This document shows, one piece after another, positions 5,925 to 29,615 of a stretch of DNA of 29,729 nt. Under the pieces are notes generated by a model, which did no database searches, had not been told where the DNA came from, and saw nothing but the letters and a program-made list of their open reading frames with translations. The stretch is from Macrostomum lignano (taxonomy: Eukaryota), in contig NIVC01004975.1 in NCBI GenBank assembly GCA_002269645.1, positions 1-29,729 of the forward strand, read 5' to 3'. Position numbers and translations under genes: made by a program. How positions within the stretch are numbered: the stretch's first letter is position 1; each line of letters starts with the position of its first letter.

Positions 5925-6662
5925 ATGAGCATTAATCTCTTGATATTCATGGCTCTGGGCCTCACGCTCGGCAGTGACAACCAGCAGCTGTATGTCCTCA
6001 TCAACGGATATCTCTGCATCAACGGCGAGTTTGTTGAGACCTACTCAAGCGAACTCAATAAAGTCGGGTGCGCCGCTCTGTGCGCCCAAAACCAGCGCTG
6101 TCAGGCGTTCAGCCTGGCTGACGGTCCGTGCCAGCTGTTCGTGTTCGACAAGTGCAGCAAGTCGGTGAGGAGCTGCGGCTGCTCCAGGAGAGGCCGGGTG
6201 TTCGTCAAGCAACGGCCGGGACTCGAGGCGGGCGCGCTGTGTCCGTCTGGCTACGGCATGGACCTGTGCGGAGTGAAGTACAGGCTGTACTCTGGCATCG
6301 GGACGTGGCGGTCTAGCAAGCAGAAGTGCGAGTCAGAGAGCGGTCTGGTCATCATGGCCGACGTGACCAGCGATCAGGAGATGAGCCATGTGAACTCCAT
6401 CTACTCGAGTTACAGCTCTGGACAGTCGATTTGGCTCGGAGGCCTCCAGCCAGCAGGCAGTGCTGAGCCGGCTGGCGGCTGGTACTGGGTCGGCTGCAAT
6501 GACACCGTGGACGCTGCTCTGTGGGCCAACAATGAGCCAAACAATAAGGGTAACGAAAATGCTATAACTAGATATCGTACTTTAGCTGGTCTGACCGACT
6601 GTAGCGAGACAACCTCTGCCACGTCTACCGTCTTGTGCGAGTGCATCTCGCCCTTCACCTAA
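5925..6662 (+). CDS. Secreted PAN/apple-domain + C-type lectin domain protein, 245 aa, intronless
   Basis: Hydrophobic signal peptide MSINLLIFMALGLTLG. PAN-like C-x3-C-x5-C...C pattern (CAALCAQNQRCQAFSLADGPCQL). CTLD motifs CPSG, W..SKQKC, IWLGG, WYW, W..NEPNN, LTDC, VLCE. GC-rich coding composition against AT-rich flanks; AATAAA downstream. Confidence 0.9.
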   Translation: MSINLLIFMALGLTLGSDNQQLYVLINGYLCINGEFVETYSSELNKVGCAALCAQNQRCQAFSLADGPCQLFVFDKCSKSVRSCGCSRRGRVFVKQRPGLEAGALCPSGYGMDLCGVKYRLYSGIGTWRSSKQKCESESGLVIMADVTSDQEMSHVNSIYSSYSSGQSIWLGGLQPAGSAEPAGGWYWVGCNDTVDAALWANNEPNNKGNENAITRYRTLAGLTDCSETTSATSTVLCECISPFT

Positions 6663-6912: not shown

Positions 6913-7538
6913 CGCTTCCGGACATTTGCCCTCCGGCACTTCCCCTCCGGCACTTGCCCTCCGGCACTTCCCCTCGGCGGCGTTTGCCCTCCGGACATTT
7001 GCCCTCCGGGACATTTGCCCTCCGGACATTTGCCCTCCGGACATTTCCCCTCGGGGACATTTGCCCTCGGGGACATTTGCCCTCCGGACATTTGCCCTCC
7101 GGACATTTGCCCTCCGGACATTTCCCCTCCGCACATTTGCCCTCTGCAAATTTACCCCCTCGCACATTACTCACCTCACCTCCTCCTGTACCCACCCGTC
7201 GTTCCTCCAGCACCAACCTCATCCTCCCGCCTCTTGCATCCATCAGGTTCTTCTCCAGCCAACAACTCATCCTTTTCTAGTAAGCAATATATACCCGCGC
7301 CCTACCCTATCCCCAGCCTTACCTGTACTTTTCCAGACGGGAAATGTCCGGAGGGCAAATGTCCGGAGGGGAAATGTCCCCGAGGGCAAATGTCCCCGAG
7401 GGCAAATGTCCGGAGGGCAAATGTCCGGAGGGCAAATGTCCCCGAGGGCAAATGTCCTCGAGGGCAAATGTCCGGAGGGGAAATGCCGGAGGGCAAATGT
7501 CCGGAGGGCAAATGCCGGAGGGCAAATGTCCGGTAGCC
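6913..7538. mobile_element. Foldback/MITE-like element whose arms are tandem 15-bp GGACATTTGCCCTCC repeats
   Basis: Left arm about 6913-7160 in one orientation, right arm about 7337-7538 as reverse complement (GGAGGGCAAATGTCC), with a C-rich spacer. Termini CGCTTCCGGACA / rc GGCTACCGGACA. GATGAGAT flanks both ends (6905-6912, 7539-7546). Confidence 0.8.
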
Positions 7539-8286: not shown

Positions 8287-9097
8287 GTAGGGAGGAGAGA
8301 GGCGGCAGAGAGAAGGACAGGTCGTAGGGAGAAAATAGGGGGCAGAGAGGACAAGGTCGTAGGGAGGAGAGAGGCGGCAGAGAGGACAAGGTCGTAGGGA
8401 GGAGAGAGGCGGCAGAGAGGACAGGTCGTAGGGAGGAGAGAGGCGGCAGAGAGGACAAGGTCGTAGGGAGGAGAGAGGCGGCAGAGAGGACAAGGTCGTA
8501 GGGAGGAGAGAGGCGGCAGAGAGGACAAGGTCGTAGGGAGGAGAGAGGCGGCAGAGAGGACAAGGTCGTAGGGAGGAGAGAGGCGGCAGAGAGGACAAGG
8601 TCGTAGGGAGGAGAGAGGCGGCAGAGAGGACAAGGTCGTAGGGAGGAGAGAGGCGGCAGAGAGGACAAGGTCGTAGGGAGGAGAGAGGCGGCAGAGAGGA
8701 CAAGGTCGTAGGGAGGAGAGAGGCGGCAGAGAGGACAAGGTCGTAGGGAGGAGAGAGGCGGCAGAGAGGACAAGGTCGTAGGGAGGAGAGAGGCGGCAGA
8801 GAGGACAAGGTCGTAGGGAGGAGAGAGGCGGCAGAGAGGACAAGGTCGTAGGGAGGAGAGAGGCGGCAGAGAGGACAAGGTCGTAGGGAGGAGAGAGGCG
8901 GCAGAGAGGACAAGGTCGTAGGGAGGAGAGAGGCGGCAGAGAGGACAAGGTCGTAGGGAGGAGAGAGGCGGCAGAGAGGACAAGGTCGTAGGGAGGAGAG
9001 AGGCGGCAGAGAGGACAAGGTCGTAGGGAGGAGAGAGGCGGCAGAGAGGACAAGGTCGTAGGGAGAAGATAGGGGGCAGAGAGGACAGGTCGTAGGG
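8287..9097. repeat. 35-bp purine-rich minisatellite, about 23 copies
   Basis: Unit GTCGTAGGGAGGAGAGAGGCGGCAGAGAGGACAAG in head-to-tail copies with no spacers. Central copies are identical; variant units occur near both edges. Confidence 0.97.
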
Positions 9098-9137
9098 AGT
9101 ATCAGAGTATCAGAGTATCAGATTACCTGAGTATCAG
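9098..9137. repeat. 8-bp AGTATCAG tandem repeat, 5 units (one diverged)
   Basis: Directly visible, between the minisatellite and the Gypsy remnant. Confidence 0.85.
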
Positions 9138-11833: not shown

Positions 11834-12850
11834 GATTGTAAAGATGAGAGAGATGAAAGGAAAGATTAGAGAGTAGAGTAGAGATGAGAGATGAAGGAAG
11901 AGAGAGCAGAGTGCAGAGAGACGAGAGAAGAGAATAGAGGGGAGAGAGTATAGAAGAGGGAAGAGAAGAGAGGAGTAAGGAAAGAGAGGAGTCAGAAGAG
12001 GGAAAAGAGAAGAGTAAACAGGAGAGAAGAGAGTAGAGATGACAGAAGAGAGAGGGGGATGAGAGAGCAAAGATGAGAATGAACAGACGATATAAGAGAG
12101 GAAAGAGGAGAGTGGATAGAGAAGAGAGAAGACAAGAGAGGGAAAGAGTGTACAAGAGGGAAGAGAAGAGAAGAGAAAAAAGGAGAAAGGTAAGAGAGGA
12201 GTCAAAAGAGAGGAAAGAGTACAGAGGAGAGAGGTGACAGAATATACGAGTGTAAGAGAGTAAAGATAACAGATGAGAGAGGGGATAAGAGATGACAGAT
12301 AAGAGAGCAGAAACGAGAATGAACAGACGAAAGATGGGTGAGTAGAGAGAAAAGAGAAGAGTTAACAAATAAAACATGAGAGATGAGAGGTGAGACAAGG
12401 GGGAAGAGAAGTGAGTGAGGAGAGAGGAGAGGAGAGGAGAGAATCGAGAGGACGGGGAAAGAGGGGAAGGACGAAAGAGTGAGGAAAGAGACGATAGAAG
12501 AGATGAGAGAAGAGAGTGGAGAGGAGAGAGGGGAGAGTTGAGAGAAGAGAGGAGAAAGGAGAGAAGAGAGATGAGGGAAGTGTTGAGAGGTTAAAGTAAG
12601 GAATGAGAAGAGAGAAGAGGGAAGAGAGAGTAAAGTGGAGAGAGGAGAGGGGAGAGTTGAGAGGAGAGGAGAAAGGAGAGAAGAGAGAGCAGAGGCTAGA
12701 GAGAAGAGAGAAGAGGAGACAGAGAAAATAATAGAGGGGAGAGGTAACAGATGAGAAGAGGGGAGAGAGGAGAGAAGAAAGAAGAGATGAGAGAAGAGAG
12801 AAGAGACGAGAGACAAGAGAGAAAAGAGGAAACAGAAGAGAAAATAGAAG
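11826..12850. repeat. About 1-kb GA-rich (purine-strand) low-complexity tract
   Basis: The plus strand is almost entirely G/A; it generates spurious L/S/F/P ORFs on the minus strand. Confidence 0.95.
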
Positions 12851-12879: not shown

Positions 12880-13095
12880 GGCAGAGGTAGAGGCCAGTGT
12901 TTGCCTGACATTCTACGCAGCACCCCAGCTAACAATATCAATGTTTGCCTCAAATCCTAATTTTACACAAATGTACTCGATTTTATGTTTAACTATATCC
13001 TAACTATTAACAAGTTTTTTGTTTGAGTTTAACCTAAGATTTTAGAGTACATACAAAAATAGTTCTGGGGATTGGAATTCCCCGGGTTCAAAATC
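12880..13095 (+). repeat. Dispersed repeat family A, copy 1
   Basis: Shares CCTGACATTCT(A/G)CGCAGCACCCCAGC, TAACTATT(A/G)ACAAGTTTTT and GGGATTGGAATTCC...TAGCTTGT with 19400-19584. Confidence 0.85.
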
Positions 13096-13903
13096 CGCGC
13101 GTTTCAATAGCTTGTTTTAATATAATAATATTTTAAGCATATTTATCGTTTGATCAATAAATTTAGCCTATCTTGAATAATTTGCCCGTGGGGCATAAAA
13201 CAACCAATTAATCTTAACTCCGAACCAGCTCTGAGAAATCAACGTCCCGCAATACGTAAATTACGGTGGTGGCAGCGCTACTCTACTGTTAGTAAGCAAC
13301 TAAGAAAATCGACGTACATTGAATTTGCGGTGTCTAAGGACCCAATTGAACGACCGTGCCTGTTAACGACCGCTCGACTACGATTACGACTACCCCCCTC
13401 CCCCCCACCCGGAATTAAGGACCCAGCAGACGGAGTATTCAGGAGAAATTCGTTGAGATTCGACTGCGTGATTTTCCGGTATTATTCCTGCGAACTCAGC
13501 TCCGGCGGCAATTCAAATTTTTTCATCCGCCCAACCACCAAAGCTCTCTTTTTTTCTCCACCTTTATACTCGTAAATTTCATCATAGATTTATGATTTTT
13601 AAAGTTGATATGAGAATGCAGCGAATTACTATTAAGTTATTGTGATTCATTTAACACAGTATTGAAGTAAAGCAAAAATTATCCAGACACCACAAATTTT
13701 CTCAAGACCTCTGGCAGTAAATTATGACGCTACACTGGAAGAACGAAAAAAAGTAAATTTTTTAGGCTGATATCCATCAAATATTGCTCTGCGGAAAGAG
13801 GAAAAAGTCATTTATTGATCACAAAATCAATGATGCATTTGATGTCGGTTAATGAAGATTACCATACTTCTAATTTGTTTGTTTGTACCACTAACTCAGC
13901 CCT

Positions 13904-14992: not shown

Positions 14993-15690
14993 CCATACCA
15001 ACAGATAAGCCCGAATGTTACGTTTCTGATGGAGTATCTTCCAGAGTTCAAGAGGAATTAACTGCAGCGGTGAAACAGCTTTCTGATATCATCAAGAAAG
15101 GAGAGGAATATTATCGAGAAGAAAAAATCGCTTCTCAAGCCCGAATGGAAGCTACGACAGAAGCAGCAGTTCCAGCTGAACCTACCGGACCTTCCAACGC
15201 TTTTCGCGATGTGAAGAAGCTGAGACGGTCAATCCAGGAGAGAGCAACGACTGCTTTCAAGAGAACTGGAAACAGAGTCCCGATTCCATGGAAGCAAATG
15301 GAGAGTGACAAGCAAAATAAAACCAGATTTGCACGCGGAAGATTTTCTCTTGATTTCAAGTCACCCCATCATTTAAACAGGGCGGAATGTGTTCAGTTGG
15401 CCGAAAAGTTGGAAAATACGGATTTGGTATTTGTCAACTACCAACATTCTGACCTTGTTGCAGATGCAGTGCATTCGGCCCAGCCGGCCCCAGAGACGGC
15501 CCAGCCGACACCAGCCACGGCCGCTGCAACAATAGCCACGAGTGCTAAAATGAACATCCCGGCAGACAAACCTGATGAGTTTGATAACTACGAGCTTGGA
15601 TCTGGAACCAGCGCTTATCAAGAATTTTTCACAAGGACCAAAGCAGTGCAACAGTGCCAGCACAGCCGCAGGGAGCTGCTACTGTACTGA
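14993..15690 (+). CDS. Putative coding exon of an unknown protein (about 230 codons open)
   Basis: Polypyrimidine-CAG acceptor at 14992. The frame is open from 14995 through the 206-aa ORF, with natural composition (charged helix, IPWKQM motif, A/P/T-rich linker). Donor CAG|GTATGT at 15709 lies in a shifted frame. No family recognised. Confidence 0.5.
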
Positions 15691-16119: not shown

Positions 16120-16240
16120 AAATCCCAGATCTCCCAGATTTCAGATCTCAGATTTCATATATCAGATCTCAGATCCCAGATCTCAGATCCCAGATTTCAG
16201 ATCTCAGATCCCAGTCTCAGATTTCAGATCCCAGATCCCG
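16120..16240. repeat. 7-bp AGATNNN satellite, short array 1
   Basis: Units AGATCTC, AGATCCC, AGATTTC. Confidence 0.9.
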
Positions 16241-16625
16241 GGATTCTAAACTTTTAAATATACAAAATACAACAGTCATTACCTATATTGTGCATATATT
16301 CTTAATGTCTTGTTTTCTCATGAAAATACCTGTGTATTAGAACTCCCACGACTCCAACTCCCTCTTCTCTTCTCTGTCTCCTCTTTCTTTCTACTGACTC
16401 CCTCCTCTATCGTGTATCATCTCTCTCCCATCTCCCAATGCACCCCAGCTCTCACTTCTCTCCCATTTCTTTTCCCTATTCACCCTATAGGTCACTTCTC
16501 TCCCATTTTTCCCTATTCACCCTATCTGTCACTTCTTCCATTTCTCCCATATTTAGTATATAAAAATATAAATTTCGAAAGGATTAGAATTTTATATAAT
16601 AGAATTTCTGTAATCATTTGCAGCA

Positions 16626-16901
16626 ATGGCAAAAAAAAGTAGAAAGAGGCCGCGGAGACCGGCGGAGGCAGCACCGGAGGCTCCGGCGGCTCCGGCGGAG
16701 GCAGCACCGGCGGAGGCGGCTGCCAGAGTTGACTGGGCCGCGGAGGTGGAGGCTGCGGCGGAGGCAGCTCCGGCGGCTCCGGCGGAGGCAGCACCGGCGG
16801 AGGCAGCACCGGCGGCTCCGGCGGAGGCAGCACCGGCGGAGGCGGCTGCCAGACGGCGGGCGGGCCGCCGCTGGGCCCGCGTCCGCAAAAGAGAAACATT
16901 A
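16626..16901 (+). CDS. Paralog A exon 1: K/R N-terminus, A/E/P repeats, GRRW motif
   Basis: Acceptor TTTGCAG ends at 16623, 2 nt before ATG. MAKKSRKRPRR PAEAAP-repeats VDWAAEVE ... RRAGRRWARVRKRETL. Phase-0 donor GTACGT at 16902. Confidence 0.6.
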
Positions 16902-16950
16902 GTACGTGCATTTGCTGCCTAAATCATTTCTATATATATCTTTGCTATCT

Positions 16951-18093
16951 AGATCTCAGATTCCAGATTTCAGGTTCCAGATCCCAGATCTCAGATTCCA
17001 GATTTCAGGTTCCAGATCTCAGATTCCAGATCCCAGATCTCAGATCTTAAATCTCAGATTCCAGATCCCAGATCTCAGATTCCAGATCTTAGATTCCAGA
17101 TCCCAGATCTCAGATTCTAGATCCCAGATTTCAGATCTTAAATCTCAGATTCTAGATCCCTGATCTCAGATCTTAAATCTCAGATCCCAGATTCCAGATC
17201 TCAGATTCCAGATTCCAGATCCCAGATCTCAGATCTTAAATCTCAGATCTTAGATATCAGATTCCAGATCACAGATTCCAGTTTTCAGGTTCCAGATCCC
17301 AGATCTCAGATTCCAGATTTCAGGTTCCAGATCTCAGATTCCAGATCCCAGATCTCAGATCTTAAATCTCAGATTCCAGATCCCTGATCTCAGATTCCAG
17401 ATGCCAGATCTCAGATTCCAGATCTCAGATCTTAAATCTCAGATTCCAGATCCCAGATCTCAGATTCCAGATCTCAGATCTTAAATTTCAGATTCCAGAT
17501 TCCAGATCCCAGATCTCAGATCTTAAATCTCTGATTTTAGATCTCAGATCCCAGATTCCAGATCTCAGATTCCAGATTCCAGATTCCAGATCCCAGATCT
17601 CAGATCTTAAATCTCTGATTTTAGATCTCAGATCCCAGATTCCAGATCTCAGATTCCAGATTCCAGATTCCAGATCCCAGATCTCAGATCTTAAATCTCA
17701 GATTCTAGATCCCAGATTCTAGATCCCAGATCTCAGATCTTAAATCTCAGATTTTAGATCTCAGATCTCAGATTCCAGATCCCAGATCTCAGATCTTAAA
17801 TCTCAGATATTAGATCTCAGATTCCAGTTTTTAGGTCTCAGATTCCAGATTTCAGGTTCCAGATCCCAGATCTCAGATCTTAAATCTCAGATTCCAGATC
17901 CCAGATCTCAGATTCCAGATCCTAGATCTCAGATCTTAAATCTCAAATTCCAGATCCCAGATCTCAGATTCTAGATCCCAGATCTCAGATTTTAGATCTC
18001 AGATCTCAGATTCCAGATCTCAGATTCCAGATCCAAGATCTCAGATTCCAGATTTCAGGTTCCAGATCTAAGATTCTAGATCTCAGATCCCAG
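16951..18093. repeat. 7-bp AGATNNN satellite, array 2 (inside predicted intron 1 of paralog A)
   Basis: About 160 heptamers: AGATCTC, AGATTCC, AGATCCC, AGATCTT, AAATCTC, AGGTTCC, AGATTTC. Confidence 0.97.
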
Positions 18094-18216
18094 ACACAGT
18101 CTCAAGTTAGAATAAGCTTTACTGAGCTTTCAGATTGATGGTCAGGCACTAGGACATTACATTACACAGAATTAAATTCAGCAAGCTTATTTGTGTAAAT
18201 ATTAATTTATTTCCAG

Positions 18217-18275
18217 ATGCAAACCGTCGCCCGCTTGCAGCTGCTGCAAGCCCAGCTGCTGGGCCAGCTGGCTGG
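18217..18275 (+). CDS. Paralog A exon 2: Q/L-rich helix
   Basis: TTTATTTCCAG acceptor; MQTVARLQLLQAQLLGQLA(G); 59-nt GC-rich island. Phase 0 in, phase 2 out, with a weak GTGATA donor. Confidence 0.5.
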
Positions 18276-19111
18276 GTGATATTTTTCAAATATTGAATGC
18301 TAAAATGTATACTCCTAAATATGCAGTCTAATTTCTTTCATTTACGATTTAAATCGTAACTAGATCGGCTTCGTCTCGGCCCATCAACACAGTCCTCAGT
18401 CTTGTATGTGGTCCAGATAAATCAGTCCATGGGGTGATACCTTATACATATGCAGGCTAGCAAAAGAAGGCTATAGGGCTGCAGGGATCAGAAGTGAAGC
18501 TGCTGGCAGATCGTAGGAGATTTCAGATTTTCAGGTGTAAAATCCCTCCCCCTCTATGCTAAAGACCTCATTAATTCTCAGCACTGTCAAACACCTTTTA
18601 GATGCCCAGCAGTTCCTTCAGTGGCTGCACTGGCTGGTCCCTCAGGTCCTTCAGTGGGTGCCCCCTCAGATCCTTCAGTGGATGCCCTTCAGAACCCAAA
18701 ATCTAAAATCTAAAATCGACACATTTCGTAGCTGTCTACTTGGAGTAGCTGGTCAGAGAAGGCATCCCCGAATCTCCAGATTTCCTGATTCTCACATCCT
18801 TATCCCTGAATGTCATATCTTCCTATCTGATTTCCTCATGTTAATCTCAGAATAGCCTCATACACAACACAACTATAGTTTATGTATAACGTCTCTGTGC
18901 ATCAAAAGCTGAGCAGTTTAGAGTTAATAAGCAATTTACTATAAATGAAAAAAACAACAGTTCTCAGAGTAAAACTTACACTTGTTCTCTGGTTCTAATG
19001 TTCTCGCTATCAGAGACCTTATTCACGTCCCATCCCCCCCCAGAAATATCTTGATAGAACAAATTGCGCGCCTCTCAAAAAAACTTACATTGCGACTTTT
19101 GAACTTTACAG

Positions 19112-19204
19112 AAATACTGGATTCGGCTTGCGGGGCGGAGGGCGAGGCGGGGGACGAGGGCGAGGCGGGGGACGAGGGCGAGGCGGCCAGCCCTTCCATC
19201 ATTG
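19112..19204 (+). CDS. Paralog A exon 3: RGG box
   Basis: ACTTTACAG acceptor; NTGFGLRGGGRGGGRGRGGGRGRGGQPFHH; donor GTAAGTTGCCA at 19205. Phase-compatible with exon 2. Confidence 0.6.
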
Positions 19205-19399
19205 GTAAGTTGCCATAGGACACCATTTGTTTTTCAACACACAAAATTTAATTTTTTGGACACATACATGTACAGTCCAGACACCTGTACAGACACACAG
19301 AGAGACAGAAAAACACGGAGAAGGACAGATAAACGGGCAGACAGACAGGTGATAAATGTGAAGGAAAATCAACGAGAGAAGAATCCGAGGGACGTGAGA

Positions 19400-19584
19400 G
19401 AGGCAGAGGCCAGAGTTTGCCAATACAGACAGACATTTCCTGACATTCTGCGCAGCACCCCAGCCATTTTAACTATTGACAAGTTTTTGTTGGGATATGA
19501 CTTCAGATTTTGGAAAACATGCAAAAGTAGTTTCGGGGATTGGAATTCCACGGTTTCAATATACGCGGTTTTCAGTAGCTTGTG
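19400..19584 (+). repeat. Dispersed repeat family A, copy 2
   Basis: See 12880-13095; this copy lacks about 60 bp of the middle. Confidence 0.85.
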
Positions 19585-19602
19585 CTAAGCGGGTCTATGA
19601 AC

Positions 19603-19690
19603 TTTGCTAGCAGGAATTTTGCTGGCCGAAAGTTGCTAGCAGGAATTTTGCTAGCGAGGATTTAGCTAGCCGAAATCTGCTAGCGAGAAT
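19603..19690. repeat. About six 15-bp repeats centred on the palindrome GCTAGC
   Basis: TTTGCTAGCAGGAAT-like units; resembles one arm of a tandem-repeat TIR element. Confidence 0.75.
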
Positions 19691-19852
19691 CCAAACAAAA
19701 CCGGCAAGCAGCAATTTGGCTAGCCGAACTCAGGAAGTTGTAATTCGGTAGAGACAATTTGCTTAGTCAAGTTTCGCAAGAATTTCACTAAATCCTCTAT
19801 AGCGTCGCTCCACTTTTACCAATCCTCTTCAAATTGGACACAATCCAATTTT

Positions 19853-20014
19853 CAACTATTTTGACACAATCGTATAGTTTCGTATCTCGAAGTTAATTCT
19901 GAACGGCACTGTGTACTTTTAAAGTTAGTCTGCTTTTCGTCAGCAAGACAGCCACCCCAACCTCCGTCTCTCTCCTTCCTGGCCACTAGACAGATGTGTG
20001 AAAGGGGTTTAAAA
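19853..20014 (+). repeat. About 162-bp direct repeat, copy 1 (copy 2 at 22874-23037)
   Basis: CAACTATTTTGACACAATCGTATA...GAAAGGGGTTTAAAA; about 5 substitutions and one 2-bp indel between copies. Confidence 0.95.
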
Positions 20015-20054
20015 TTGACTAACTTTCAGCTGACACAAGTATGCTCCACGTATA

Positions 20055-22740
20055 TTTCAGATTCCAGATCCCAGATCTGATTCCAGTTTTCAGGTTCCAG
20101 ATCCCAGATCTCAGATTCCAGATTTCAGGTTCCAGATCCCAGATCTCAGATTCCAGATTTCAGGTTCCAGATCTCAGATTCCAGATCTCGGATCTTAAAT
20201 CTCAGATTCCAGATCCCAGATCTCAGATCTTAAATCTCAGATTCTAGATCCCAGATTTCAGATCTTAAATCTCAGATTTTAGATCCCAGATCTCAGATTC
20301 CAGATCTCAGATTCCAGATTCCAGATCTCAGATTCCAGATCTCAGATTCCAGATTCCAGATCCCAGATCTTAAATCTCAGATTAGATATCAGATTCCGGA
20401 TTTCAGGTTCCAGATCTCAAATTCCAGTTCCCAGATCTCAGATCTTAAATCTCAGATTCCAGATCCCAGATCTCAGATTCCAGATCCCAGATCTCAAATC
20501 CTTAATTTCAGATTCCAGTTCCCAGATCTCAGATTCCAGATCCCAGATCTCAGATCTTAAATCTCAGATTCAAGATCCCAGATCTCAGATCTTAAATCTC
20601 AGATTCTAGATCCCAGATTTCAGATCTTAAATCTCAGATTTTAGATCCCAGATCTCAGATCTTAAATCTCAGATTTTAGATATCAGATCCCATATTCCAG
20701 ATCTCAGATTGCAGATTCCAGATCCCAGATCTCAGATCTTAAATCTCAGATCTTAGATCACAGATTCCAGTTTTCAGGTTCCAGATCTCAGATTCCAGAT
20801 TTCAGGTTCCAGATCTCAGATTCCAGATCCCAGATCTCAGATCTTAAATCTCAGATTCCAGATCCCTGATCTCAGATTCTAGATCCCAGATCTCAGATCG
20901 TAAATCTCAGATTCTAGATCCCAGATCTCAGGTCTTAAATCTCAGATCCCAGATTTCAGATCTCAAATTCCAGATCCAGATTCCAGATTCCAGATCACAG
21001 ATTCCAGTTTTCAGGTTCCAGATCCAGATCTCAGATTCCAGATTTCAGGTTCCAGATCTCAAATTCCAGTTCCCAGATCTCAGATCTTAAATCTCAGATT
21101 CCAGATCTCAGATTCCAGATTCCAGATCCCAGATCGCAGATCTTAAATCTCAGATCTTAGATATCAGATTCCAGATCTCAGATTCCAGATTTCAGGTTCC
21201 AGATCTCAAATTCCAGTTCCCAGATCTCAGATCTTAAATCTCAGATTCCAGATCCCAGATCTCAGATTCCAGATCCCAGATCTCAGATTCCAGTTCACAG
21301 ATCTCAGATCATAAATCTCAGATTCCAGATCCCAGATCTCAGATCTTAAATCTCAGATTCCAGATCCCAGATTTCAGATCTTAAATCTCAGATTTCAGAT
21401 CCCAGATCTCAGATCTTAAATCTTAGATTTTAGATCTCAGATCCCAGATTCCAGATCTCAGATTCCAAATTCCAGATCTCAGATTCCAAATTCCAGATCT
21501 CAGATTCCAAATTCCAGATCTCAGATCTCAGATCTTAAATCTCAGATTCCAGATCACAGATTCCAGTTTTCAAGTTCCAGATCCCAGATCTCAGATTCCA
21601 GATCTCAGATCTTAAATCTCAGATTCCAGATCCCTGATCTCAGATTCTAGATCCCAGATCTCAGATCTTAAATCTCAGATCCCAGATTTCAGATCTCAAA
21701 TTCCAGATCCAGATTCCAGATTCCAGATCACAGATTCCAGTTTTCAGGTTCCAGATCCAGATCTCAGATTCCAGATTTCAGGTTCCAGATCTCAAATTCC
21801 AGTTCCCAGATCTCAGATCTTAAATCTCAGATTCCAGATCTCAGATTCCAGATTCCAGATCCCAGATCGCAGATCTTAAATCTCAGATCTTAGATATCAG
21901 ATTCCAGATCTCAGATTCCAGATTTCAGGTTCCAGATCTCAAATTCCAGTTCCCAGATCTCAGATCTTAAATCTCAGATTCCAGATCCCAGATCTCAGAT
22001 TCCAGATCCCAGATCTCAGATTCCAGTTCACAGATCTCAGATCATAAATCTCAGATTCCAGATCCCAGATCTCAGATCTTAAATCTCAGATTCCAGATCC
22101 CAGATTTCAGATCTTAAATCTCAGATTTCAGATCCCAGATCTCAGATCTTAAATCTTAGATTTTAGATCTCAGATCCCAGATTCCAGATCTCAGATTCCA
22201 AATTCCAGATCTCAGATTCCAAATTCCAGATCTCAGATCTCAGATCTTAAATCTCAGATCTTAAATCTCAGATTCCAGATCACAGATTCCAGTTTTCAAG
22301 TTCCAGATCCCAGATCTCAGATTCCAGATCTCAGATCTTAAATCTCAGATTCCAGATCCCTGATCTCAGATTCTAGATCCCAGATCTCAGATCTTAAATC
22401 TCAGATCCCAGATTCCAGATTCCAGATCTCAGATCTTAAATCTCAGATTCCAGATCACAGATTCCAGTTTTCAGGTTCCAGATCCAGATCTCAGATTCCA
22501 GATTTCAAGTTCAAGATCTCAAATTCCAGATCCCAGGTCTTAAATCTCAGATTCCAGATCCCAGATCTCAGATTTAAGATCCCAGATCTCAGATTCCAGA
22601 TCCCAGATCTTAGATCTTAAATCTCAGATTTCAGATCCCTGATCTCAGATTCTAGATCCCAGATCTCAGATCTTAAATCTCAGATTTTAGATCTCCGATC
22701 CCAGATTCCAGATCACAGATTCCAGATCTCAGATTCCAGA
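20055..22740. repeat. 7-bp AGATNNN satellite, array 3 (about 2.7 kb) with higher-order duplication
   Basis: Same heptamer family. Rare variants recur at a 733-bp offset. Ends in (TTCAA)4 at 22741-22760. Confidence 0.97.
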
Positions 22741-22873
22741 TTCAATTCAATTCAATTCAAGTTTGCTCCACGTATACAGCCATTGACTACAAACTTTATA
22801 CCATTCTTCAATGACTCATTATTTGTCTAAATATAAAGTCTAAACTTTGTACTTTTTGACACAACTATTTGAA

Positions 22874-23037
22874 CAACTATTTTGACACAATCGTATAAAG
22901 TTTCGAGACTCGAAGTTAATTCTGAACGGCACTGTGTACTTTTAAAGTTAGTCTGCTTTTCGTCAGCGAGACAGCCACCTCAACCTCCGTCTCTCTCCTT
23001 CCTGGCCACTAGACAGATGTGTGAAAGGGGTTTAAAA
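22874..23037 (+). repeat. About 164-bp direct repeat, copy 2
   Basis: See 19853-20014. Confidence 0.95.
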
Positions 23038-23354
23038 CTAACTACTGTCCTACTACGAGCTATCTGATTGCGACTTGAGAGTATTCTGTCCCCACAATGA
23101 CAAACTGACTTTCCAAGCACTTGAACTGATGAGCCAGCAGATTTGTCTGTCTTGTGTGTCTGACCATACGCTCGTATATATTCTATATGTACTAATATAC
23201 ATTATAAATTTTAATTCTAAATTCTAGTATATTATATATAGTCGAATAGTTTTCCCATAAAAGTTTGAACGCTGACTTGCAAGCAGCCTACTAGGAGTTA
23301 TCGTACATTGAGAGAGGGCCACCGTTCTACACCCACCCCAAAACTGAGCACGCG

Positions 23355-23630
23355 GGCCAATGAGAATTCTCCCACGGTGAGTTAGGCAAGCCAACCCCTC
23401 CCTTTGATTAATGAGCCTCTCGCTTTTTGATTCAACGACGGCCACCACCCACGGTGTAAGTTAATTTGTGGCTTTATTCACCAGTATCAAGGAGCTTATA
23501 TAAAGAGCTGGAAAGAAAATTCTATCCTTGTCTCATTTTAAGCATAGGCCTGCATAGAGTATAAATATTTGAGCGCAAGCCTAACGGCTTTACTTGGTTA
23601 TTTTTAATTTGTCTTTAAATACAGGTAAGT
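23355..23630 (+). promoter_or_regulatory. Candidate Pol II promoter and first non-coding exon
   Basis: GGCCAATGA (NF-Y-like) at 23355-23363, TATATAAAG at 23497-23505, and a consensus donor CAG|GTAAGT at 23625. Motif arrangement only. Confidence 0.35.
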
Positions 23631-24256
23631 TCAAGGAATCGAATAATTTTAAAGCGAAAATGCCACTGTTTGAATAATTCTTAGTAAAATTCAGTTTTGC
23701 TGCAAGCGCACGATATCAAGTTTTTTCAATGGAATATATTAGATTATTCTTTCAACGAGCGTCATAAGACTTGGCGCCAAGTTTTTTGATTGTGATTTTC
23801 GCTTGCAAAAATTGTGGATGGCATTTTGAACTATAAAATTGTTCGACTTCCTAGAGTCTTACTCTGATAATACGCTTTATAATAACCAATATTTGCTTAG
23901 TTTTAAGCATATATAGTGAGTTTTAAGCTATGCGCATTTAGTTATAACAGACTTAGACATTTATTATAGGTAAATATTTACAGTTCATAATAAGCTATAT
24001 ATATATATTTAGTAATAAGCTATATATAGTTATTTCTGTCATATCTGTTATCTATCCTAGTGTCTATCTTAGTGTCTGTCCCAATGTCTTTCTTAGTGTC
24101 TGTCTTACTCCACTTCTCTCCCGTTGTCTCTCCTCTGCTCTCTCTCCCGTCTTCTTTCCTCTGCTCTCTCTCCGTCTTCTTTCCTCTCTTAGTACTCTCA
24201 TGGCTGTTCTCATGCTTTGATCACGTCTTCTTTCTTGCCAATTTGCAGTCCTGAAA

Positions 24257-24972
24257 GGAATTTGTGTATTTTAATCTCCACTGCAGTCTGCAGCAGTTTA
24301 ACAACAAAGGAAATACGCATTTCTTAGGAGGAAATTTAAAATTCAAAGCACTTTTAAGAGAAACCTAAAATTTCCATGGTGTGACTAATTTAGTAGGGTT
24401 GTATTGCATTGCATCGCCTTTTCATAAATCTTTCGCTTTTACAAACCATGCTGAATTCCCTCGATTTGCCATCCACTGTTAAACTGCTGCAGAGTTTTCT
24501 AATACAGACGACAGTGGTTAGAATTTCTCACTAAACTGTCATGGCTAAACGTAGCCTCTCCACGCGCGGGGGTACAGAGAAGGCTATTAAAAAGTTATTC
24601 CAAAACACTGTACATTTGCTATGTACATGTACATTCAGTCCTATCGCCTGACCCTTCGTCTGGCTCTGGGGGAATGAGTGAGTGAGTGGCACAAACAACA
24701 GAAAAAGCAGACAAACTTCACATGCTTACAGTTTCTTTTTCGGTTGAGTTACAGAGTTGAAACTTCCTATTTCAACTTGAAATTAAAACTTAAATATTGA
24801 AACTAATCAATCAGCAGCCCTAAGAGGAATTTGTGTATCTCCAGCTCCATCACAGTCTGCGGCAGTGTAACAACCAAGGAAATATGCATTTTTAGGAGGC
24901 CATTTAGATTTAAAAAATTACCTTATGCGAATCTTAATGTTAAAATCTTCATGGCGTAACTAATTTAGTAGG
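24257..24972 (+). repeat. Old diverged direct repeat pair (24257-24397 and 24826-24972)
   Basis: Shared anchors GGAATTTGTGTAT, CAGTCTGC(A/G)GCAGT, AAGGAAATA(C/T)GCATTT, TTAGGAGG and ACTAATTTAGTAGG in the same order. Confidence 0.85.
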
Positions 24973-25133
24973 ATTACATAGCCATCCACTTTTCTCTTTC
25001 CCACCGTTTCTAGTGCTCCCAAAGCACACAAATTTTTCCTATACACAAGCAATATACTGAACACAGACCTTTAAATCCAGGAGGTTCACCCTGAGTATCT
25101 GAGTGACCTGCGAGACAACTAGGAAGAGTAGGC

Positions 25134-25340
25134 TACTAAAAGTAGTATGAGGAGGACATGTGCACTATGGTTTCTAGACATACACTAGCATCACGAATCC
25201 GGCGCCTTAGAAGCAGCGGCTTACGGCTGTAACGGCTTACGGCTTACTAACTGAAATTGCGCTGGGCGGGCGGGCTGGTTTATCTGATTGTGGGGAAAGT
25301 CTTCGGAATTTTTTAAAATTTTTAAACGGACAGACATTTT

Positions 25341-25382
<42 letters not shown>

Positions 25383-25967
25383 TACATACAGAAGGACAGA
25401 CAGGCAGACAGACAGACAGACAGACAGATAGACACATACAGAAGGACAGACAGGCAGACAGACCGATACAGACAGACATACAGAAGGACAGACAGACTGA
25501 CAGGCAGGCAGACCGATACAGACATACAGAAGGACAGACAGACAGACAATTCCGAGAACTTTCCCTACAATCAGATATGAACCCTCGGGGCGAAATAGTT
25601 GGATGTGCCTATGTATATATTGTATTTAAATAAAAATGGTTCGCCCCGAGGGTTCTTACCCAGCCCCCTTTTTGGATTAAAAATCTTTGCCTTCAATTTC
25701 TTCCTTATTTATTGATCATACCATAGTATAAGCTTGGCAGGTTGTAATCAGTAAAAAAGCATTGCACACTGTTCCGATTTACATTTAAAAAAATATTACT
25801 TAGGACTGCCGTTCAATGCAACCAATTAAGTTCAATTCCAGCACCCCAGCAGCCTGGCTGGCTAGCCCTGGTTTGGCCACTCGGCTACGTTCTGATACTT
25901 GGCGGCACTGCATCCTACCATCCTACGAGTTATTGCATCCTACTACAACAGATAAGTACATTCCATC
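25134..25967. mobile_element. Helentron/HINE (DINE-1/pearl-like) non-autonomous block, copy 1
   Basis: Inverted repeat 25282-25300 / 25558-25576 (18/19) flanks a (GACA)n-type microsatellite (about 25330-25548). Perfect 16-bp hairpin 25579-25594 / 25640-25655. Homologous to 28487-29615. Confidence 0.55.
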
Positions 25968-27056
25968 CACAATTGACTCGTTCGTCTTAAGCAAATACCC
26001 TCCAGAATCCACCCTGGGTCTTTACCCTCCAGAATCTTCAGCAATATGTAACGAAGACAAAACTAACCAGTTAAAAACATTTTGCACTCTCATTCAGATT
26101 CTGCCCGATCGCTACGAGGGCTTCGAGCGCGCTCTGCCGTTGCCGGAGCTCTGGGCTGCCGGCTTTTTAATCTAGCCGGACCTGGGGCCCAGGATATGGC
26201 CTGGCCGCTGCGATGCCATAGGGCACCACAAATCTGCACCTGGATACCTGGATACTTTTGTCACCATAGCAAAACGAGTTGAAAGTGAGAAGCATATGAA
26301 TGCTTATTTAAAACCAGTTTAATTATTGGTTTAGTAACTTTAGTTTAGTGAAAACAGAATTAACTGACTAACATTGACAATTTTAATATATTCGCTATAG
26401 CTACCATAAAGCTCTCTAGTCATGCTACGCTATAAATTTACACTGAATGTTGACTGTTTACATACGTTACCAATTATTGAGCAATTAACTGATATCCACA
26501 GTCACTTATTACTCTGTATCCATGACAATACCTGTAAACTATTTTTCCTACTTAAATCCATCACAATAGTAATCAATATTTTATTGCCTAATAACTGAGA
26601 TATCTTTTAATTCTATAATGTCAAATCCTATTTTACAATTCAATACATATCAGTTTTCAAATATCAATTCTCTACTTTTATTCGATTTATTTTATACTGT
26701 ACTTCGATTTATTTATATTGATGCACTGCTTTATTACTGTTCTTATACTACTGTTCTTATTAATGTTCTTGTAGTTGTTTTTTTAAGAGAATAACTGTGT
26801 ATTAGAACTCCCACGACTCTCAACTACCCCATCTCTCCTCTTTCTACTGACTCCCTTCACTATCATGTTCACGTACCCTCTCCCATCTTCCCATGCACCC
26901 CATCTGTCATTTCTCTCCTCTTTTTCCCCATGCACCCACTTCTCTCCTATCTTTTCCCCTATCCCCCTCTCTCTAAAAAGTAGCCTTAGTAACTCAGAAT
27001 CAATTCATTTACTATTATTTATCTAATTTTCAATTTTTAATTTATCTAATTTTCAG

Positions 27057-27529
27057 ATGGGCAAAAAAAATCGATAAAAAAAACGTCCGGCCGTCCAGCT
27101 CCTGCCCGCCCGAACCCTCCCAACCCTGCTGCATCGGCCCCGGCCCCGGCGCCTAACCCTCCTGCCCGCCCGAACCCCCCAACCCTGCTGCATCGGCCCC
27201 GGCGCCTAACCCTCTTGCCCGCCCGAACCCCCCAACCCTGCTGCATCGGCCCCGGCGCCTAACCCTTCCGGCCGCCAGGGGCCTACAACTCGCCGCTCAT
27301 ATGCGGCTGTTGTAGGCTCCAGGCCAGCCCCTCCAGCCCCTGCCCCACGCCCTCCCCCCCCGCTGCTCAGCCTCACCCTTCCGCCAACCCGTCCCATCCC
27401 CTCCAATCCCTGACCCACGCCCTCCACCCCCCCTGCCGGATCTCACCCGCCGGCCCCACCTGCTGCCGCCAGATTTATTCCACCCCCTATCCATCGGGTG
27501 GAAGGAAATGGCGAAATTATAACAGAAAT
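27057..27529 (+). CDS. Paralog B exon 1 (apparent frameshifts at homopolymers): K-rich N-terminus, P/A/N repeats, GRKW motif
   Basis: TTTCAG|ATG start and phase-0 donor GTAAGT at 27530. Adding one base to each of four runs (A8 27063, C6 27175, C6 27228, C8 27354) gives 477 nt, fully open: MGKKKSIKK...RRSYAAVV...GGRKWRNYNRN. Confidence 0.5.
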
Positions 27530-27623
27530 GTAAGTTATTAAGTTATCGCATCAGTCTTTTATTCTTTTTCTAGTTTTTATTCAATTCAATTACAACCAAT
27601 AGAACCCTCAACATTTTTTTTAG

Positions 27624-27697
27624 AGAGCCGCTGTGCGGCAGTTCCTACAGCTTCAGCAGCAACTGCAGCTGCTACAGCTGGAAGCCTACTGCAAAGG
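27624..27697 (+). CDS. Paralog B exon 2: Q/L-rich helix
   Basis: T8AG acceptor; RAAVRQFLQLQQQLQLLQLEAYCK(G); phase 0 in, phase 2 out; donor GTATGT at 27698. Confidence 0.55.
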
Positions 27698-27778
27698 GTA
27701 TGTATTCAACTTAATACTTATACAGATCTAGAAATAACTATTTCTGATGGAGCTTTCTCCGCCAGAAAGTAGAGTAGG

Positions 27779-27858
27779 TTCGGGTTCTTAGAGGTTCGAA
27801 TCCTTAGAGTTTCAGGTTCTGAGAGTTTCAGCATCTCAAAGTTTCGGGTTCTTAGAGC
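27779..27858. repeat. 16-bp tandem repeat x5 (TTCGGGTTCTTAGAGG-like)
   Basis: Five diverged 16-bp units in the predicted intron 2 of paralog B. Confidence 0.8.
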
Positions 27859-27887
27859 TCTCGCAACCTCAATCACCCACACTACAG

Positions 27888-27959
27888 CTTCTACAACACC
27901 AACGGGCGAGGCCCACGAGGCGGAGGCGGCCCTGGTGGCGGCCAGCCACTCCAAGCCTA
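27888..27959 (+). CDS. Paralog B exon 3: RG/RGG-rich
   Basis: CTACAG acceptor; FYNTNGRGPRGGGGPGGGQPLQA; same donor GTAAGTTGCCA (27960) and phase as paralog A exon 3. Confidence 0.55.
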
Positions 27960-28066
27960 GTAAGTTGCCACACTACACAGGCTGTATTACATATAATGTA
28001 CATGTCCCACTTCTTTCCAACCGTGGCTTGCACCATCAGTACACCACATACCAGATAAATAAACGA

Positions 28067-28420: not shown

Positions 28421-28486
28421 CATAGATGGTAGATAGTAGGATAGTATCCTACTAGTAGATAGTAGATAGTAGGATCTCTAGTAAGA

Positions 28487-28692
28487 TACTAAAAGTAGTA
28501 TGAGCGAAACATGTGCACTATAGTTTAGGGATATACACTAGCATAATGTTGTAAGGTCGCAATTTATCATTATTTTTAAAGATGGCCCGAAGAAATGGTC
28601 CTTTTCCACTCACACGTCTGATTTCTTTTCCAGATGGAAGTTGATTTTCTGCAAGGAGGGGCCTGCCCCGCCGCCGCCGCCGCCACCGCCAC

Positions 28693-28723
<31 letters not shown>

Positions 28724-29615
28724 GCCACCGCCTCGCCGGCTGAGGCGACTGCGGAGCGGCCGGCTGCAGCTACTTTAAGACTTTAAGCAGGGCTGGGCTA
28801 CAAATCTGATTGTAGGAAAGTTTGTATATATATAGATAGATAGGATAAAGGAATGGATAAAAATTTTACTGTTTAAGACATTTGGAATTAATTATTTAGA
28901 CAGGCAGACAGACAGACAGACAAACTTTCCCTACAATCAGATACGAACCTCGGGTCATAATTAATAATAAATAATTTAAATAATAAATTAAATAATAGAA
29001 AGTAATAAATAATAAGTAATAAATAATTAAATAATAAATAATTTAATAATTTAAATAATTTAAATAAAATTTGAGTAATTTAAATAATAAATTAATAATA
29101 AATTAATAAATTAGTAATAATGTTTATTGTTTATTGTTTGTTAATGTTATTGTTATTGTGTTTATTGTAATGTTGTTGTAATGTTGTAATGTAATGTAAT
29201 GTTGTAATGTTGTAATGTAATTGTAATGTTATTGTTAATGTTTATTTATGTTTATTAAATGGTAAATATTTAATAATAATTTAATAATGTATTAAATTAA
29301 TCGGCCCGAGGTTCTGCCCAGCCCAATTTTTGGAATAAAAATCTTGCGCTTCAATTTCTTCCTTATTCAATGATCATAACATAGAGTTTAAAACAGTAGA
29401 GCTCAGTGGTAGATGTTTCAGAAAAGTGTCATTATCAGCCAGTAGGCTTGGCAGGATAGTACTTAGGAATGCTGTTAATGCAACCAATTGAGTTCAATTT
29501 CAGCACCCAGCAGCCTGGCTGGCTAGCTGTGTTTTCGCCACTCGACGTTCTGATACTTGGCGGAGGTGCTTAGCGAGTTATTGCATCTTGCGACAACAGA
29601 TAAGCACATTCCATC
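28487..29615. mobile_element. Helentron/HINE-like block, copy 2 (diverged homolog of 25134-25967)
   Basis: Shared TACTAAAAGTAGTATGAG start, inverted repeat 28804-28823 / 28922-28942, short (GACA)n, hairpin arms 28945-28956 / 29303-29314, and a colinear 3' segment ending CATTCCATC. Confidence 0.55.
28634..28776 (+). other. GC-rich exon-like island with a (CCG/CCA)n triplet tract
   Basis: TTTCTTTTCCAG acceptor directly before ATG. Two open readings: poly-Ala (MEVDFLQGGACPAAAA...) or poly-Pro (GPAPPPP...RRLRRLRSGRLQLL). Coding frame undetermined. Confidence 0.35.

Follow-up and report, generated by a model that had tools for sequence, protein, structure and literature searches.

The window analysed here (the whole 29,729-nt stretch of DNA) contains two loci, A and B, which lie ~10.5 kb apart and which a preliminary description had presented as a pair of paralogous three-exon genes encoding a basic, disordered RGG protein. 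Their features are as follows; a slash within a motif marks a splice boundary.

16298..16555, + strand: locus A upstream block, pyrimidine-rich, exact 25-bp core at 16330-16354, homologous to 26762-26988
16556..16623, + strand: locus A AT-rich segment, 68 nt, 19% GC, bounds TTA/GTATAT and TTGCAG/ (from composition and sites)
16626..16901, + strand: locus A putative coding exon 1, 92 codons, 74% GC, phase 0 end; MAKKSRKRPRRP, PAEAAP-type repeats, ...GRRWARVRKRETL
16902..18216, + strand: locus A putative intron 1, GTACGT...TTTCCAG, carrying a 1.1-kb heptamer-based satellite at 16951-18094
18217..18275, + strand: locus A putative coding exon 2, 59 nt, phase 2 end; encodes MQTVARLQLLQAQLLGQLAG
18276..19111, + strand: locus A putative intron 2, GTGATA...TTTACAG
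19112..19208, + strand: locus A putative coding exon 3; encodes NTGFGLRGGGRGGGRGRGGGRGRGGQPFHHW; stop TAA at 19206-19208
26762..26988, + strand: locus B upstream block, exact 25-bp core at 26795-26819, homologous to the locus A block
26989..27056, + strand: locus B AT-rich segment, 68 nt, 18% GC, bounds TTA/GTAACT and TTTCAG/ (from composition and sites)
27057..27529, + strand: locus B exon-1-like segment, frame-broken (ATG GGC AAA AAA AAT CGA TAA)
27624..27697, + strand: locus B exon 2, open, 74 nt, phase 2 end; encodes RAAVRQFLQLQQQLQLLQLEAYCKG
27888..27963, + strand: locus B exon 3, open; encodes FYNTNGRGPRGGGGPGGGQPLQA

The two loci are paralogous. Exactly two occurrences of the 25-mer CTGTGTATTAGAACTCCCACGACTC, at 16330 and 26795, are found in the whole window, both on the plus strand; shuffled sequences gave no 25-mer match even at 3 mismatches, and a reverse-strand copy of the core, as a possible inverted terminus, was not found in the window. 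The 25-mer is the core of a homologous stretch (16310-16527 versus 26775-26972; 73.5% identity, E=6.5e-34), which the MAFFT alignment widens to ~16298-16555 versus 26762-26988, yielding a block of ~240 bp with 73.5-80% identity between A and B. The tract following the 25-mer is 82% C+T at both loci, versus 49% window-wide, in agreement with the exact block and pyrimidine tract reported earlier. At the other end, a second match (19161-19223 versus 27916-27978), with a score reached by 0 of 500 shuffles, comprises the end of exon 3 and GTAAGTTGCCA, a motif found in the window only at 19205 and 27960, so that the shared sequence described earlier as a donor context is genuine and lies inside a significant match. 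Both significant DNA matches are colinear and on the same strand, which indicates that A and B descend from one unit of ~1.2-2.9 kb. No homology was found between their flanks, and blastn, tblastn and motif searches of the window detected no third copy.

It is the DNA that establishes the paralogy; protein similarity is not significant by itself. The motifs GRRW/GRKW, LQLLQ, NT and GGQP are present in the frames in which they had been described, but per-exon similarity between the A and B proteins is within chance (shuffle p = 0.06-0.14) and BLASTP of the C-terminal halves gave E=13; the order of composition blocks is unusual for exons 2 and 3 combined only (p=0.005). The protein-motif parallels should not be counted as evidence of selection. 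Transposable-element traits were not seen in the window, with neither terminal inverted nor long terminal repeats, no transposon domain and two copies only. We also considered and rejected the two blocks as long terminal repeats of one 10.5-kb retroelement: they are only 73% identical, and the region they enclose has no gag/pol ORF and consists mostly of satellite. The window is crowded with tandem arrays and dispersed duplicates.

The anatomy of the two loci corresponds closely. All four proposed junctions (16901/18217, 18275/19112, 27529/27624 and 27697/27888) are canonical GT...AG, although these sites were picked by eye so as to fit a frame; GT[G/A]AG, the donor motif of M. lignano, is matched at only one of the four internal donors. 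GC content alternates at both loci between 58-74% in exons and 18-41% in the intervening segments, and A and B alike have a Gly codon divided as GG/N between exons 2 and 3. The third, phase-2 donor that had been proposed is ambiguous: it coincides with in-frame stops, TGG TAA at 19203-19208 in A and TAG TAA at 27958-27963 in B. The stop TAA of locus A overlaps the donor-like GTAAGT at 19205, and the tandem stops of locus B, TAG (27958-27960) and TAA (27961-27963), overlap GTAAGTTGCCA.

As described earlier, an AG acceptor lies directly 5' of the ATG at both loci (TTGCAG/CAATGG in A, TTTCAG/ATGG in B). The AT-rich segment preceding it has the same length, 68 nt, in the two copies, and a donor-like TTA/GTA is found exactly 68 nt 5' of the acceptor in both. 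The two acceptors fit [T/C]TNCAG, the trans-acceptor motif of M. lignano (PMC8629364), and SL trans-splicing at such acceptors concerns 10-30% of Macrostomum genes (PMC8629364; PMC10468722). As in SL trans-spliced flatworm genes, the acceptor abuts the ATG, the motif fits and a long, pyrimidine-rich, outron-like tract lies 5' of it; unlike in those genes, there is a donor-like TTA/GTA 68 nt upstream, and an ordinary 5'UTR intron would therefore also account for the acceptor. The 68-nt segment of locus A is thus possibly an intron of the 5'UTR or the last part of an outron ahead of an SL trans-splice acceptor, and the upstream block of A is probably a promoter plus a 5' non-coding exon, or an outron. 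Neither the M. lignano SL sequence nor an SL RNA gene is present in the window. ATGs at 16438 (A) and 26865 (B) are in frame through the 68-nt segment; we rejected them as evidence for a coding upstream block, because 82% C+T sequence seldom has stops and because the A/B alignment (MAFFT) contains indels of 1, 2, 7, 8 and 13 bases, which are not multiples of 3.

Once spliced (16626-16901, 18217-18275, 19112-19208), locus A forms an intact 143-codon ORF from ATG to stop, with a good start context (GCAGCAATGG). The repeat units of exon 1 (15, 24 and 39 nt) are all multiples of 3, as is the 18-nt unit of exon 3, present 2.7 times at 100% identity. The open frame of exon 1 counts for little as coding evidence, because 4 of the 6 frames are open in that region. 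No AATAAA or ATTAAA occurs within 700 nt 3' of the stop. The conceptual product has 143 aa, a pI of 11.6, four RGG and one predicted helix, which AlphaFold places at residues 68-113 (pLDDT 87-98), spanning the exon 1/2 junction, with low confidence elsewhere; heptad support for a leucine zipper is weak. Its tail, RGGGRGGGRGRGGGRGRGG, contains the four RGG and qualifies as a tri-RGG box (three or more RGG with gaps of 0-4 residues). On paper, therefore, the A product is the basic, mostly disordered RGG protein that had been proposed, but B, with one RGG and one further RG, is not a tri-RGG protein. The RGG of A, spaced by 1-3 residues, resemble those of RG/RGG proteins, namely the GAR domains of fibrillarin, nucleolin and GAR1 and the FUS-type boxes, as do its Gly/Arg-only, low-confidence (disordered) tail, very basic character and NLS-like N-terminus. 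Unlike fibrillarin, nucleolin, GAR1 and FUS, it lacks an RRM, a KH, a methyltransferase or any other folded domain, its sequence has no detectable homology to theirs, and its paralogous locus has one RGG only. RNA binding and condensate formation by the A product may be envisaged from these features.

Locus B is different. Its exon 1 is not open: the frame of the ATG at 27057 reads MGKKNR and then TAA, a stop at codon 7, and the frame that ends in GRKWRNYNRN at the donor is another one, with an internal stop and without an ATG. Opening exon 1 takes three or more single-base changes in homopolymers, and only 16 of 729 combinations succeed; the protein previously assigned to B hence spans three frames piecewise. 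As assembled, locus B is unable to make that protein. The 53-nt repeat of its exon 1 (3 copies, 27099-27266) is not a multiple of 3, and the position equivalent to the A helix is helical with low confidence in the predicted structure. Rescue by the terminal ATG of the SL itself was rejected, since this ATG would be in the same frame as that at 27057 and would run into the same stop. Thus, of the proposed pair of three-exon genes, the common descent and gene-like layout stand, but B appears to be an unprocessed, intron-retaining pseudogene or, at best, a non-coding relic that is transcribed. Like an unprocessed (duplicated) pseudogene, it retains introns, splice sites and upstream region, while its exon 1 has frameshifts and a premature stop; it differs in that exons 2 and 3 are still open and the 5' block is well conserved, so that it may still be transcribed. 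An assembly error is a less likely alternative.

The comparison of the two copies does not bear out the earlier suggestion of selection on a fast-evolving disordered protein. The parts best conserved between A and B are non-coding, namely the upstream block and the sequence from the stop onwards, and the repeats are wholly different (PAEAAP in A versus PNPPNPAASAP in B). At the end of exon 3, where a few coding bases can be aligned, one difference is synonymous, three change the amino acid and a further one is nonsense; no excess of synonymous change was found there.

Database searches agree with the statement that the protein belongs to no named family. An exhaustive phmmer search of 1.84 billion representative proteins with the locus A product gave 0 matches at E<=1e-3; a word-indexed search returned only two spurious matches for it (E about 0.5-1) and nothing for the conceptual B protein; and the A product matched no Pfam family and no PDB entry. 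Rfam covariance models at gathering score gave 0 matches across the whole window, as did metagenome scans with the 25-mer and with a degenerate 3'-block pattern. A neighbouring ORF of 245 aa encodes a C-type lectin, the closest relative of which comes from Macrostomum lignano (56% identity); it had no high-identity match in the collections, from which the source species thus seems to be missing, and exact-product look-ups for this ORF and for the A exon 1 ORF found no record. Synteny via the M. lignano lectin relatives gave nothing, P0003 having no record and P0005 being on a 925-bp contig. Fast-evolving, taxon-restricted genes are frequent in Macrostomum; those linked to reproduction evolve fast, and their counterparts in other species are difficult to find (PMC7336406). 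Locus A resembles such taxon-restricted genes in its low complexity, in having no homologue found outside the window, in the complete replacement of its repeats relative to B and in its flatworm-like context, as judged from a single neighbouring ORF, the lectin, at 56% identity.

The best explanation, and in our judgement an even call, is that locus A is a lineage-restricted candidate coding gene, and locus B its unprocessed pseudogene, in a flatworm-like (macrostomid) genome. The paralogy, the anatomy, the intact frame of A and the broken frame of B are seen in the sequence; transcription, splicing, translation and function we infer. Locus A would consist of a pyrimidine-rich 5' region, an acceptor at the ATG and three GC-rich coding exons, with the stop within the conserved GTAAGTTGCCA. 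Its product would begin with a basic, NLS-like N-terminus (KKSRKRPRR), followed in order by a spacer of acidic Ala/Pro repeats derived from an in-frame minisatellite, a basic helix across the exon 1/2 junction and the C-terminal tri-RGG box; by composition, it could act in the nucleus or nucleolus as an RNA-binding or chaperone-type protein and self-associate via the helix. Locus B would be a duplicate that kept the splice sites, the 5' block and open frames in exons 2-3 and lost the frame of exon 1, the 53-nt repeat having expanded afterwards, free of coding constraint. Should A prove to be expressed, a flatworm genome would gain a further RGG protein of the taxon-restricted, low-complexity kind, and the locus would exemplify complete turnover of coding repeats with a persisting regulatory block and intron positions. 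This would concern workers on orphan genes, on disordered proteins and on the reproduction or stem cells of Macrostomum. Its description as the best candidate for an undescribed system was overstated: the locus is a candidate taxon-restricted gene, which opens no new kind of system and settles no open question. The practical value of the check is negative, in that two genes become one candidate gene and a decayed copy.

It is somewhat unlikely, yet deserving of weight, that both loci are non-coding, that is, old copies of a lncRNA gene or of a dispersed-repeat remnant with a conserved 240-bp block, in which the apparent exons are GC-rich, triplet-like minisatellites and CAG/CTG-rich islands, open by composition. 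The superior conservation of the upstream non-coding block, the 4 of 6 open frames in A exon 1, the broken frame of B, the zero protein homologues, the non-significant per-exon similarity and a window full of tandem arrays and dispersed duplicates all suit such an origin. It does not readily explain why GC alternation and GT-AG boundaries fall at equivalent points, with the same Gly split and an equal 68-nt segment, or why every repeat unit of A is a multiple of 3; and two copies only in 30 kb, the lack of terminal repeats and the lack of a transposon protein domain also speak against it.

A bolder extension of the preferred candidate-gene reading, which we regard as unlikely, is that of a family of small nuclear RGG proteins confined to macrostomids, with coding exons that are minisatellite arrays swapped wholesale between paralogues (PAEAAP versus PNPPNPAASAP), while the 240-bp 5' element, the intron positions and the short helix stay constant. 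If true, tandem-repeat dynamics in a satellite-rich region would here be driving the birth and turnover of proteins, perhaps with a link to the germline.

That both loci are functional, the breaks in B exon 1 being assembly errors in homopolymers (A8, C6, C6, C8), is improbable. The B protein, of ~207 aa, would run MGKKKSIKK..., PNPPNPAASAP repeats, ...GRKW, the LQLLQ helix and a GGQP tail. In favour, B has every splice site intact, as well as exons 2 and 3, and one solution requires four +1 changes, each in a homopolymer of at least 6 bases, and restores regular 18-codon repeats. The choice of edits is, however, flexible, as the 16 of 729 combinations that open the frame attest. Moreover, the C6 state of repeat unit 2 recurs in unit 3, within a tandem period of 53 nt (93% matches), which argues that the unit was copied after the frame had been lost; the lectin ORF, the only other long ORF that could be checked, shows no frameshift relative to its relatives at 91% coverage; and the RGG box of B is degenerate, with TGG changed to TAG at its end.

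Finally, it is also improbable that the unit is the 5' part of a larger gene with further exons downstream, GTAAGT at 19205 and 27960 being a real phase-2 donor: GTAAGT is the consensus donor, fits the M. lignano motif GT[G/A]AG (PMC8629364) and, together with TGCCA, forms the most conserved 3' stretch (11 of 11 bases), but both frames already stop there (TGG TAA, TAG TAA), the sequences downstream of A and of B share no homology, and the nearest acceptor-plus-GC island after B, at 28634, would give TA/A, a stop.

The reading that we favor, with moderate confidence, is that the first of two similar forward-strand units in the window (locus A) is a candidate gene, restricted to its lineage, whose product would be a small and basic RGG protein, disordered for the most part, and that the second (locus B), about 10.5 kb downstream, is an unprocessed, decayed duplicate of it. 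As the preliminary description had reported, an exact 25-bp block lies upstream of the start codon in both, at 16330 and 26795; it occurs at no other position in the window, and no such match would be expected by chance. The 25-mer is the core of a longer homology (16310-16527 versus 26775-26972, 73.5% identity, E=6.5e-34), which MAFFT widens to approximately 16298-16555 versus 26762-26988, and whose C+T content of 82% in both loci bears out the pyrimidine tract described there. A second colinear match, located where the proposed exon 3 ends (19161-19223 versus 27916-27978), has a score reached by 0 of 500 shuffles, and the common donor context, GTAAGTTGCCA, was indeed found at 19205 and 27960 only. 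No similarity between the flanks of the two units, upstream or downstream, was found with blastn or tblastx, and a search for a third copy within the window returned none. Since nothing else is shared between their surroundings, the duplicated unit is gene-sized, approximately 2.9 kb in A and 1.2 kb in B, with introns accounting for the difference.

All 4 splice junctions proposed previously (16901/18217 and 18275/19112 in A; 27529/27624 and 27697/27888 in B) are canonical GT-AG, and the proposed exons form GC-rich islands (74, 68, and 69% GC in A; 67, 58, and 68% in B) separated by segments of 26-41% GC. In both loci, a glycine codon is split GG/N at the exon 2/3 junction. Absent from the preliminary description is a donor-like TTA/GTA located exactly 68 nt upstream of the acceptor that precedes the ATG in A and B, which delimits the following segments:

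16556-16623, forward strand, 68-nt segment of locus A (18-19% GC in the two segments)
26989-27056, forward strand, 68-nt segment of locus B

By our own estimate, equal spacing would occur by chance in about 6% of cases, as the intervals searched contain just 3 and 2 GT dinucleotides. Given this equal donor-acceptor distance in the two loci, the conserved 5' block may represent a promoter together with a noncoding first exon, the 68-nt segment being the intron after it. Another possible reading is that the pre-ATG acceptor is a spliced leader (SL) trans-splice site: trans-acceptors of M. lignano are enriched for [T/C]TNCAG and its SL ends in ATG (PMC8629364), trans-splicing affects 10-30% of the genes in Macrostomum (PMC10468722), and TTGCAG and TTTCAG, the acceptors of the two loci, fit the motif alike. 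Upstream ATGs in the pyrimidine-rich block (16438 in A, 26865 in B) are in frame with the main ORF once the 68-nt segment is spliced out, the former reading through as MHPSSHFSP...IFT-MAKKS and the latter entering the GQKKSIKK frame; this read-through is probably a composition effect, because the 5' block carries indels whose lengths are not divisible by 3.

Splicing of 16626-16901, 18217-18275, and 19112-19208 in locus A yields an uninterrupted frame of 143 codons, with a conceptual product of 14.6 kDa and pI 11.6 that contains 30% Ala, 14% Arg, 13% Gly, and 4 RGG motifs. Single-sequence AlphaFold2 predicts one helix (residues 68-113; pLDDT 87-98 over 71-110), which spans the exon 1/2 junction, with low confidence outside of it. 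A protein of such composition would be expected to reside in the nucleus or nucleolus, to associate with RNA, and to self-associate through its single helix, as extrapolated from what is well known about basic NLS-like patches and RGG boxes.

The strongest of the competing explanations, which we nevertheless regard as unlikely, is that neither locus codes and that the "exons" are GC-rich repeats kept open by their composition. The exon 1 region of A is open in 4 of the 6 frames, so that openness there says little about coding, and all coding repeat units of A have lengths divisible by 3 (exon 1: 15, 24, and 39 nt; exon 3: 18 nt), which is not rare among the other arrays of the window. The predicted proteins of A and B also show only a weak likeness: BLASTP of the C-terminal halves gave E=13, and in Smith-Waterman comparisons against shuffles the exon 1 ends reached p=0.06, exon 3 p=0.07, and exon 2 p=0.14. 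The one comparison that stands out is that of exons 2 and 3 combined (p=0.005), a signal that reflects the order of the blocks, Q/L-rich and then G/R-rich. At the DNA level, the best local match near exon 2 corresponds to LQLLQ, in the same frame in A and B and with both differences synonymous, and is not significant (p=0.28). With similarity this weak in the proteins and in exon 2, the paralogy rests on the noncoding 5' block and the last ~60 bases. The list of kept motifs does not amount to evidence for the selection on the protein that had been suggested from it. On the side of a coding locus A stand its intact frame and the canonical junctions.

Of the pair of RGG protein genes described initially, the intact frame of A stands, whereas B does not hold up as assembled. 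Its ATG at 27057 gives MGKKNR followed by TAA, and the frame that ends in GRKWRNYNRN at donor 27529 has an internal stop and lacks an ATG. When every combination of -1, 0, and +1 was applied to the six homopolymers of at least 6 bases in exon 1, which lie at 27063, 27076, 27175, 27228, 27354, and 27427, 16 of 729 opened the frame, the smallest requiring three changes. Among them, a set of four +1 changes produces regular 18-codon PNPPNPAASAP repeats, as would be expected were both loci functional and the breaks homopolymer assembly errors. This reading seems improbable to us: in the assembly, the array has a 53-nt unit (3 copies, 93% matches), and the frame-breaking C6 is common to repeat units 2 and 3, indicating that the array expanded after frame loss, which favors genuine decay over a sequencing error. 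B retains open exons 2 and 3, has one RGG and one RG left in its RGG box, and carries TAG in place of the final TGG of A; AlphaFold places a helix at the position corresponding to that of A, with a pLDDT of about 50.

The third phase-2 donor of the preliminary description, GTAAGT at 19205 and 27960, matches the consensus perfectly, and no other stretch at the 3' end of the units is as well conserved, but the frame ends exactly there (TGG TAA, 19203-19208 in A; TAG TAA, 27958-27963 in B), the stop in both loci being the TAA within GTAAGT, and no shared exon downstream of it was found between A and B. A real phase-2 donor is possible and not needed for the gene model; a larger gene, of which the unit would form just the 5' part, is the least probable of the explanations.

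In a phmmer search of the A product against 1.84 billion representatives, there were no matches at E<=1e-3, and word-indexed searches with the A and B products, Pfam, PDB, and metagenome DNA scans returned nothing relevant, in keeping with the earlier failure to recognize a named family. Detectable homologues are thereby excluded within the collections searched, proteins of M. lignano among them. In Macrostomum, genes that evolve fast and are hard to trace, above all those related to reproduction, are well documented (PMC7336406), so an orphan of this type is not surprising. Rather than the undescribed system envisaged initially, A and B would be a possible addition to the taxon-restricted RGG/low-complexity genes, plus a pseudogene.

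Micro- and minisatellites abound in the window (74 TRF rows), which is animal DNA, and an Rfam scan of its whole length gave no RNA family at gathering score. It also carries a lectin gene candidate:

5925-6662, forward strand, 245-aa ORF lacking introns; signal-like N-terminus, PAN/apple-like part, C-type lectin domain

Codakine (1.5e-5), langerin, and MIC5 are among its matches in PDB. The nearest relatives are 3 M. lignano C-type lectin proteins (56, 52, and 51% identity), all remaining matches having at most 40% identity or covering only a quarter of the ORF; no near-identical protein was found on record. This ORF, the one feature of the window that bears on its taxonomy, makes a macrostomid flatworm the most likely source of the DNA. 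Just downstream are inverted arrays of a 15-nt unit, TCCGGACATTTGCCC (6917-7144 and 7342-7533; arms of up to 126 nt, 95% complementary, ~200 nt between), and a highly regular tandem array (8287-9099; 35-nt unit, 23 copies, 97% matches) also occurs. A 206-aa forward-strand ORF (15070-15690), ~600 bp upstream of the conserved block of A and without a match in Pfam or PDB, may be an unrelated orphan or, in an operon-like pair, the upstream gene. A 50-aa forward-strand ORF (28634-28786), with its ATG directly after a TTTCCAG acceptor and then a (CCG)n tract, resembles the A/B layout (acceptor, ATG, GC-rich triplet repeat) and has no DNA homology to either locus. Dispersed duplicates of 73-83% identity, probably repeat-element fragments, bracket locus B (25127-25967 versus 28480-29615) and link sequence downstream of A (19436-19583) to 12901-13115, where an AG-rich tract of ~1 kb (11880-12850) ends. 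A heptamer-based satellite (CAGATCC/CAGATTC/CAGATCT) lies upstream of A (16122-16237), in its intron 1 (16951-18094), and downstream (20054-22743), the last array, of 2.7 kb, lying between direct repeats of 190 bp (19834-20021 and 22855-23044; 91.7%), with GCTCCACGTATA on both sides.
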